The notes: a model not told the origin generated them from the letters alone. DNA of 64,000 bases from Gracilinanus agilis (GCF_016433145.1 NC_058132.1:165185025-165249024); one strand, 5' to 3'; positions 14,001 to 17,000 are shown, numbered from the stretch's first letter. Translations and numbers: made by a program.

Positions 14001-17000
14001 ATAGGCAACTCCCCCTCCTCCTTGCGCCAACGCAAATGTGGTGGAGGATCCCCCTGCACCTCACATGGAAAGTCAGCAGGGGTATCAGCCAGGACCACCT
14101 GGTTCACAGGCCTGCGCAGGAAGGAGGGGCGCTCTGCCACAGAGGAATGGGGATAAGGTTAGTAGGATGTCTACATGACCTGTAAGTCCCCACTCCCCAA
14201 CCTTAGGAATTCATGTACTCACCAAAAACCACAAGTTCAGCTGCCCCACTATCACGTTCTCCTGCCACATTGGAGGCCACACATACATACATCCCAGCAT
14301 CGCTCTTGAGTGTGTGTGACATCATCAGTTTCCCACCCCGAATCTGCAGAATGCAGGAGCAGCTTAACTCCTTTGAACTTAATAGTCCCCTCTCCTGCCC
14401 CAATACTCTTCTGCCCAGCTATACCTTTTGCCCATATTTGACTTTAAAACCACCTATTAGCTCACAGGACAACCAGATTACACTTTATCTCCCTAATTTC
14501 TTACCTCCTCCTTCCTTCTTTTCCTTCCTCCTTCCTCTCTTCTTCCCTCCCTCCCTTCCTTCCTTCTCTCCCTCCCCCCCTTCATTATTCTTTTGTCTTG
14601 CTTCTTTCATAGTGACCAGAGTCTGACTACCTAAGTCTTTCCATTAGTAAATTATGTATAGAGTTTTTTTTATAGGCTTTACAATTGATTTCTCTTGAAT
14701 TCAAAATTCTATTATTTAGTAGATGATCAGCCTTTGAGTAACCCAGGGTGGGTGATTCTTTAAAAAAATGCTTCTTAATTTTGACTTATAATTAAATTCC
14801 ATTGATTAAAAAGCATCGTAGTATGAGTCAGGAGACCAGGACCCTTTATCTGTCACAAACTACTTTCTTGATCTTGAGTAAGTCACTTCCACTTGAGAGG
14901 GACCCTCAGTTTCCTTCTCTGTAAAATATTAGGTTTTGAATAGTTCATCTCTATTGATGCTAAAATTCCGGATTTCAAGACTTTTATACTATAGATCCTT
15001 CCTTTGACCCTAGTTGTCCCACCTCTCCAATGACTCCAGTCCCTCACCGTGATTCGTCCTTCCTGCTCCTTAAGCCGAAGATTGCCCTTCTTCCAGGATA
15101 CTGAGGGTTCTGGGTGGCCCTTGGGGGGTATACATTCCAGAACTGCAGGTTCCCCCACCGCCACTACCACATCCACTGGGGGCTGCCGGAAGTCATCCCT
15201 CAGGACTGAAAAGACAAGGAGTGGATAACAAAGGAATTTTTTAGAATATAGACGGGGTTAAGGGAATATGTGAAGACTAAGCAAGGGTGACTCCAGTTTT
15301 TCAAGCTAGTGTACCCTCTAAAACTTTAGGTCCCAATCTGGATGTACAGGAACAGGGCTCTGTCACTGCATGGAGAAGCCGAAGTTTGTAGTGCACTGTA
15401 AAATTAAATAAGGAGTGAGTAGTTGCCCATCTGAGAAGGAAGGGTTTGTAAAGTGCCAGGACCACGCCAATTAGATCACTGGATATGCTATGCTGGGATT
15501 GTGAAAGCAATTGTGGCATGAATTAGGTTAGGCATTTGCCCTGAAGTCTCTGGAACAATTTAAACCCGGCTACTTACCCGCCACCTCCAGGGAAGCGTTC
15601 CGACTGGCTGCCACTCCTAGGTAGTTGCGAGCTACGCAAGTATAGACGCCCTCATCTGGACGGGCTCGGCGTCCATGCACGATACGAGGGAAGAAGAGTG
15701 CGCCACTAGGTAATAGCAGTCGGTGAGCCCGGGGATCTTCTCGGGCTGTGGCCACACGGGCACCGTCCTTGTACCATTCGATGTCGGGACGGGGCCTGCC
15801 CTCCGCACGGCAAGGCAGCGTGGCAGGCTCACCCCTGGAGACCAACAGATCTGGTGGCTGTTCCACTATACGTGGCACTGCGTCCTCCGGTCCAGCCCGC
15901 GACCCTGAAAAGAGGAAGAGGTGGGAGGACTGCCCAAAAGAGGGTAAACTATGGCAAGTGGTCCAGAAGTAAAGGGTTAGTTTCTCCACACCCCCTCCCT
16001 CAGTGCAGATTTCCTACGAGTCACATGGCCTTCCACATCGCAAGATCCACTCTCCCTAGCCGAAATGCTGGGACACTCCGGGCTCCGCTTAGTTCTAAAA
16101 AAAAGAGACATCCTGAGGGAAGCTTAAGGCATGGAGCTGAGAAAGGACCCGCTTGAGGATCGACAAACAGGTCAAGAACTGGAATATGGTCACACATTGG
16201 CCTCCTCCCTTCCTGGGCATCCCAAGACGTTCCAATTTCCTGGCTATCTCACTGGATAAGAGAAAGGTAGACGTAGTTTTGAAGTACCAAAGCTTACCTG
16301 GGTAGAGACAAAGAAATAGAACGACTTTCCTGAAAGTGCGGTGGGGGAGAATGAAGTGGGGGGCAGGGGGGGGGGGGAGGGAATTGTGGCTTTTATTTAC
16401 TGGGAACTGTAACCAGTCTAGGCCAGTAGGCGTCGCTACTGCCACACCTAAGAGTATAATAGGGACTTTAGGTTGGGCCGTTGGGGCAAGGAGGATACAC
16501 TAAGGAATGCCCCCTAGCTGAGCAACCCTGAGCCCTTCCAGAGTGCCCATCAGCTGTTGGCTTTGGTTTGAAATTAGGTTTGACTTTCCTGTCCGTTAGA
16601 AAATTCGAATGGAGACTGAGCTGGGCCACAGTTCCTTTCTTCCTTTCCCTGACCCCTTGGATGAGAAGCCAGCAATGTGTGTATGGAAGTAGGAAGATAT
16701 ATAGAACTTATGATTTTATTGGTATTGTGATATCCTGGATGAAGACTTCCCTTGAAGTTGAACCCATGCAGGTTGACACATCTGCAAAGTAACTTACAGA
16801 CTTAAGAAATTATTAAAATATTAAGAGATTCAGTGACTTGTCCTGACTCACACATCTAATATGTGTCAGAGGTAGGATTTCCACTGGAGTCCTTCTATCT
16901 TCAAGCCCAATTCTCTATTTCCTATGCCACAAAAAAAAATTGTTTTTACTGTTTTTAAACTAATTGCCCTGACATGCTCTGGCTCATAATGCAAAATCTC

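Follow-up and report, generated by a model that had tools for sequence, protein, structure and literature searches.

A candidate alternative 5' leader exon in intron 1 of the marsupial ROBO3 gene

The ROBO3 locus and a segment of its first intron

ROBO3 governs midline crossing by commissural axons, and N-terminal A and B isoforms of the receptor have been reported to differ in Slit binding. We examined this gene in a 64,000-nucleotide stretch of the genome of the opossum Gracilinanus agilis (NC_058132.1:165185025-165249024, hereafter the window), where it is encoded on the minus strand. Most ROBO3 exons in the window translate to sequence 100% identical to the NCBI ROBO3 protein of Gracilinanus agilis; exon identity was 94% to Monodelphis and 89-92% to seven Australidelphian species. 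Our subject is a short segment of intron 1, 393 nt upstream of exon 2, which an earlier note had read as a hidden signal-peptide first exon, and which we consider here as a candidate alternative 5' leader exon. Coordinates of the features discussed are collected in Table 1.

The sequence features on which that note was built are all present in the window: a reading frame running from an ATT at 16352-16350 to a phase-1 donor at 16298, a TAG at 16502-16500 that closes the frame upstream, and no ATG between the TAG and the donor. The sole ATG in the interval 16700-16298 lies at 16550, upstream of the TAG. The last exon base of the donor, CCAG/GTAAGC, is 16298, and its phase is the one that exon 2 requires; as in first exons of the ROBO1b/DUTT1 type, it adjoins the G/SR of exon 2 in phase 1. 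These features exceed the average in strength. Scored with our own approximate donor weight matrix, the site reached 11.2 bits. This was the best of the 143 GT sites in intron 1, with the next best at 7.6 bits, and it exceeded the scores of the real donors of exon 1 (8.5 bits) and exon 2 (10.4 bits). On the opposite strand, donors of this strength had a density of about 5 in 64 kb, which gives an expectation of ~0.2 per 2.8-kb intron.

The donor is preceded by a pyrimidine tract. In the 20 nt ending 3 nt before the AG, 85% of bases were C or T, which places the site in the top 2% of AG sites, and the pyrimidine fraction was kept in the three marsupials aligned below (0.85, 0.85 and 0.75). Because the tract directly precedes the donor, the two together form a juxtaposed acceptor-like (3') and donor (5') splice-site motif. 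The hydrophobic run of the predicted peptide is this pyrimidine tract in translation and is therefore not an independent feature. Frames stayed open for 18 codons in ~40% of cases, and 3% of those were equally hydrophobic.

Conservation among marsupials and the wombat model

A full-length bat ROBO3 protein (P0152), obtained from a representative search, served as the query for marsupial orthologs. Among its matches was a wombat protein of 1079 aa (P0381; UniProt A0A4X2LYF7, Ensembl-derived). The N-terminus of this protein reads MAVATPSGLDWLQ...KVFLFLCAYPG/SRGGPED, its opening letters being MAVATPSGLDWLQLLVKGSHNSPPPTLFPHHTFPKVFLFLCAYPG. Its 45 leader residues are homologous to the window frame and are joined to exon 2 at the same donor point, so that both peptides pass from ...YPG to SR(G/A)GPED. 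By BLASTP the window frame matched residues 1-44 of the wombat protein with 32/49 identical positions (E 5e-19) and two in-frame gaps. Opposite the wombat Met, the window has a GTG at 16445-16443, 31 codons upstream of the ATT. Given this homology and the shared splice point, the annotation of another marsupial treats the homologous segment as an alternative first coding exon, and the note's suggestion of an alternative 5' exon spliced to exon 2 was borne out to that extent. The wombat model may draw on transcript evidence, since a spliced first exon without a template protein suggests transcript data.

To place the segment in a wider context, the window locus was compared with those of Sarcophilus (Tasmanian devil, L001) and Dromiciops (monito del monte, L002), with platypus (L003) as outgroup. 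Wombat was compared through its protein only, and fruit bat through a Logan contig (L004). Intron 1 aligned end to end across the three marsupials, with pairwise identities of 76-78%. The 13-nt donor motif and the 15-nt run that holds the GTG were 2 of the 14 invariant runs of at least 12 nt in this 2.8-kb intron, and their positions match the start and the end of the wombat exon exactly. The donor is thus invariant across the deepest marsupial split, which supports that part of the note's reading; chance alone, at an identity of 0.6 per column, would leave a 9-nt donor unchanged in three species in ~1% of cases. In the sequences compared, a donor 393 nt upstream of exon 2 is conserved among marsupials, and at least one annotation uses it for a first exon.

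The body of the segment told a different story from its ends. Three-way identity from the GTG to the donor was no higher than in the surrounding intron (Table 1), which argues against a hidden signal peptide. The middle third was rich in indels, and the monito lacks ~45 nt there. The TATA-like motif that had been noticed upstream of the ATT is present in the window, but its position reads GTAAACGAGAG in the devil, is deleted in the monito, and falls within coding sequence in the wombat. The reading frame was not maintained either. From the GTG to the last exon base there are 147 nt in the window, and from the wombat ATG 132 nt, both in frame with the donor; the corresponding distances from the GTG are 140 nt in the devil and 98 nt in the monito, both out of frame. 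No Met was found in the phase-1 frame of the window, devil or monito, and the wombat alone has an ATG (1/4 species). The last 11 codons could be aligned in all four species and showed many replacements (e.g. L/H, C/Y, L/P/A). The monito stretch reads FLFHYAYP, with a His at the centre of the hydrophobic run. The earlier view of the ATT as a decayed ATG was not supported either, as the devil has non-ATG bases at this position, the monito has a deletion, and a Met is missing from the corresponding place in the wombat peptide. No match to the candidate segment was found in platypus intron 1 (~6.2 kb) or in the fruit-bat contig.

With another possible acceptor, CTCTTAG/G at 16449-16448, a cassette of 150 nt (16447-16298), in frame and free of stops, would lie between exons 1 and 2. 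The AG of this acceptor occurs in this genome only; the devil reads TAC/G and the monito TACA.

Table 1. ROBO3 exons 1 and 2, intron 1 and its features in the window, listed along the transcribed strand. A slash marks a splice junction; identity is three-way identity per column among window, devil and monito.
Feature	Position	Strand	Identity	Remarks
Exon 1, coding part	18679..18838	-	0.94	ATG 18838-18836; encodes ...PPLNG; donor AAC G/GTGAGA at 18679
Intron 1	18678..15905	-	0.596 overall	2774 nt
Conserved non-coding block	17940-18100, core 18017-18070	-	0.91
Second conserved non-coding block	17300-17440	-	0.87
In-frame TAG	16500..16502	-		closes frame upstream
15-nt run TGTGGCAGTAGCGAC	16432..16446	-		invariant in three marsupials; holds GTG 16445-16443
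Candidate alternative leader exon body, GTG to donor	16298..16445	-	0.48	148 nt, 49 codons + 1 base; no ATG
Candidate, middle third	16399-16335	-	0.20	indel-rich
TATA-like GTAAATAAAAG	16390..16400	-		unconserved; within wombat coding sequence
ATT, start proposed as decayed	16350..16352	-		in the least conserved part of the segment
ATT to donor		-	0.50
TTTCAG, acceptor of proposed 32-nt poison exon (TTTCAG/G)	16330..16335, junction 16330/16329	-		AG in window only, of three genomes aligned
Donor TACCCAG/GTAAGC, 13-mer TACCCAGGTAAGC	16292..16304	-		phase 1, 16298/16297; invariant in three marsupials
Robo3B-equivalent frame, directly upstream of exon 2	15905..16013	-		open; no ATG in window
Exon 2	15578..15904	-	0.87	GG TCG CGG ... 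GCG G/GTAAGT; G/SRAGPED...SLEVA; Ig1 domain; phase 1 at both ends

Interpretation of the segment

The conserved ends, the free-running interior, the lack of a stable open reading frame and the single annotation together look like a non-coding alternative leader, and not like a coding signal-peptide exon. To the reading that 16445-16298 is a marsupial alternative 5' leader exon (or donor) of ROBO3, non-coding in this species, we assign a probability of about 0.5. On this reading, which is drawn from sequence comparison, the candidate exon would be transcribed and spliced in Gracilinanus, and a transcript including it would be spliced from the donor at 16298 to exon 2 at 15904. In the wombat, as annotated, the exon carries an ATG and would give a 45-residue alternative N-terminus. 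In the opossum the same codon is GTG and the exon has no ATG in any frame, so that the transcript would reach its first AUGs in exon 2, where three (15777, 15676 and 15655) lie out of frame. As the exon lacks an ATG here, the transcript would carry a leader that is non-coding or unproductive, or could at most yield a weak GUG-initiated form from 16445.

Several observations weigh against this reading. The canonical exon 1 is used by 17/17 full-length NCBI marsupial ROBO3 proteins examined, and no other annotated protein with the wombat leader was found in a search that sees cluster representatives of 593-1888 aa only. The wombat model itself is 91.6% identical, with gaps, to the NCBI wombat protein, skips ~100 residues and differs at the C-terminus. 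There was no CpG-island character upstream of or at the candidate, where the observed/expected CpG ratio was 0.28-0.43 compared to 0.55 at the exon 1 promoter, and no conserved TATA motif was present at the candidate among the aligned marsupials. Because three genomes were aligned, the invariant 13-mer is suggestive and not decisive.

The segment might also be neutral intron, in which a strong donor stands by chance behind a pyrimidine tract and stays unused in this species; on that view, the annotation in the wombat would be an artefact or a wombat-only event. The body identity at or below the intron background, the ~0.2 donors of this strength expected per intron, the origin of the hydrophobic frame in the pyrimidine tract, the absence of the exon from the NCBI marsupial isoforms examined and the absence of a homolog in platypus and fruit bat all agree with this account. 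It would leave unexplained that neither the donor nor the 15-mer varies across the deepest marsupial split and that the two coincide exactly with the wombat exon ends, and a spliced first exon without a template protein would be hard to produce without transcript evidence. We regard neutrality as less probable than the leader exon, but as the strongest of its rivals. A coding isoform initiated at the GUG at 16445-16443 was judged improbable. The GTG is in frame with the donor here, aligns with the wombat Met and has G at both -3 and +4, and the end of the resulting 50-residue leader could act as a signal or anchor sequence, its 8-mer VVLFLCLY being strongly hydrophobic (Kyte-Doolittle mean 2.98). 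However, the GTG is out of frame in the devil and the monito, and the monito stretch contains a His. A cleavable signal peptide would have a short n-region, an h-region of ~7-15 residues and small residues at -3 and -1; here the run is only ~8 residues long and follows an n-region of ~40 residues, and a Tyr stands at -3 before the G/S junction. As for a non-AUG start at the ATT, which the note had also offered, it found support in no species compared.

Two further readings make use of splice sites at the donor. The recursive splice sites known from vertebrates are found in introns that measure tens to hundreds of kb. Such sites, reportedly described in vertebrates by Sibley and colleagues and by Duff and colleagues in 2015, resemble the candidate in their juxtaposed pyrimidine tract-CAG/GTAAG motif, conserved as a unit. 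If the candidate were a recursive or intermediate site, exon 1 would use the pyrimidine tract and CAG as an acceptor, the regenerated donor would then join exon 2, and the mRNA would bear no trace. The strong acceptor and strong donor at the site are juxtaposed, the whole TACCCAG/GTAAGC is invariant, and the pyrimidine tract is kept in three species. Yet intron 1 is only 2.8 kb long, and the wombat model retains sequence upstream of the site that recursive splicing would remove; we therefore consider recursive splicing very improbable. The note's alternative of a 32-nt poison exon (16329-16298), which would sit between exons 1 and 2 and shift the frame, has both its TTTCAG/G acceptor and its donor in this genome. 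The acceptor AG (16331-16330) is nonetheless CG in the other two genomes (CCCGA in the devil, TCCGA in the monito), and the wombat peptide has a Pro (FPKV) where the window frame has an Arg at this acceptor, so that, judged by the peptide, the AG is absent there as well. We give such an exon still less credence.

The reading that we consider the least probable of those set out here is one that the note had offered, a vestige of a ROBO1b/DUTT1-type signal-peptide first exon inherited from an ancestral vertebrate Robo gene with its ATG decayed. Short signal-peptide first exons do exist in ROBO2 and fish robo3 (P0022, P0040), and those of ROBO1 isoform b/DUTT1 and ROBO2 share with the candidate the phase 1, the ...G/SR end and a hydrophobic stretch before the junction. 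Those exons, moreover, possess an AUG, a short n-region and coding sequence that is conserved; the candidate lacks the AUG and the conserved coding sequence, and its n-region would measure ~40 residues if counted from the GTG. The body of the segment evolves like neutral intron within marsupials, and with such drift any similarity dating from the divergence of the Robo paralogs would have been lost. The segment is absent from platypus and bat, and none of the three aligned genomes shows an ATG or a stable frame. From the note's interpretation we retain the candidate alternative 5' exon and the donor, which is conserved, and set aside the ATT start, the TATA motif, the maintained frame and the descent from a signal-peptide exon.

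We also considered the published eutherian isoform Robo3B, as the note had mentioned reported N-terminal A/B variants of Robo3 in connection with the segment. In the passages of Ruedel et al. 2016 (PMC5028924) that cite Camurri et al. 2005, Robo3B arises from an alternative transcription start in intron 1 and swaps the first 53 residues for 33 others; the same source gives residues 18-31 of human Robo3B as QFPCLNALRHPLSP. In genomic open reading frames and annotated isoforms, the eutherian Robo3B leader was found to be intron read straight into exon 2, unspliced. Its junction reads MERPEDSLSLWSLNLSPQFPCLNALRHPLSPG/SRVG in chimpanzee and MADGVFFFFSGASTSPQFPSLNALRPDPHSPG/SRVG in fruit bats, with rodents and carnivores alike, and a single unbroken open reading frame (541-984) runs through leader and exon 2 in the fruit-bat contig L004. 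Robo3B resembles the marsupial candidate in having an alternative 5' end within intron 1 that displaces the exon 1 peptide. It differs in that its leader is contiguous with exon 2 and has an in-frame ATG ~32 codons upstream, whereas the marsupial candidate lies 393 nt upstream and would need splicing, and for this reason the candidate is not the published Robo3B exon. DNA similarity was not detected either: local alignment of the bat leader region with 16260-16480 gave a score of 12.0, which was matched by 44/300 shuffled bat sequences and is not significant. In the Robo3B-type frame, no Met precedes exon 2 before the preceding stop in the window, devil, monito or platypus, and one is present in fruit bat. 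The Robo3B-type open reading frame was eutherian-only in the sample examined.

An unlikely extension of the leader-exon reading is that intron 1 of marsupials may hold the start of a separate spliced "B-type" ROBO3 transcript, independent of the unspliced eutherian Robo3B. Its leader would be evolving freely, and would have gained (wombat ATG) or nearly gained (opossum in-frame GUG) a new hydrophobic N-terminus. If true, a key axon-guidance receptor would here be acquiring a protein N-terminus born of a pyrimidine tract. Should RNA confirm use of the exon, it would offer a useful example of alternative 5' ends specific to one lineage in a guidance receptor that has been closely studied, and would leave the understanding of the canonical ROBO3 receptor unchanged. 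For annotation, the segment illustrates that a frame that is open and hydrophobic and ends at a strong donor may be no more than a pyrimidine tract beside a splice motif.

Other 5' ends and other elements of intron 1

One further NCBI marsupial isoform, Monodelphis X3 (P0391, XP_056650530.1; an NCBI prediction), is shorter and starts with MMSHTLK in exon 4, at ~14340 in the window. Worked out exon by exon, the next in-frame Met after the junction of leader and exon 2 is likewise in exon 4. As this is the first in-frame Met for any transcript without exon 1, X3 fits exon-1-less transcripts. It is consistent with an alternative 5' end in didelphids without proving one, as other 5' ends would yield the same product.

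A word search with exon 2 returned eutherian genomic open reading frames and ROBO1/2 fragments only, and no marsupial fragments. Twenty sequencing runs with a small share of the query may be RNA; the share was 0.13 in X1-X3, about the exon fraction of the query.

Intron 1 had no match in Rfam. It holds two conserved non-coding blocks (Table 1). The more strongly conserved block, at 17940-18100, includes a 54-nt unchanged run, GGAGTCATTACTGCTAATTACAGTGATTAATAAATGACTGCGACAACCCGAAGC, and is rich in TAAT/ATTA homeodomain-type motifs; it looks like an intronic enhancer. No platypus match for it was found. The block at 17300-17440 is also present in platypus intron 1 (L003 3496-3623), with 69% identity over 131 nt (E 2.6e-10), and is therefore older than the therian-monotreme split. 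Two other stretches, 17544-17683 and 16824-16930, matched the platypus ROBO3 locus at many positions and in both orientations (60-79% identity); they represent an old interspersed repeat, probably a SINE (short interspersed nuclear element) of the MIR/Mon-1 type.

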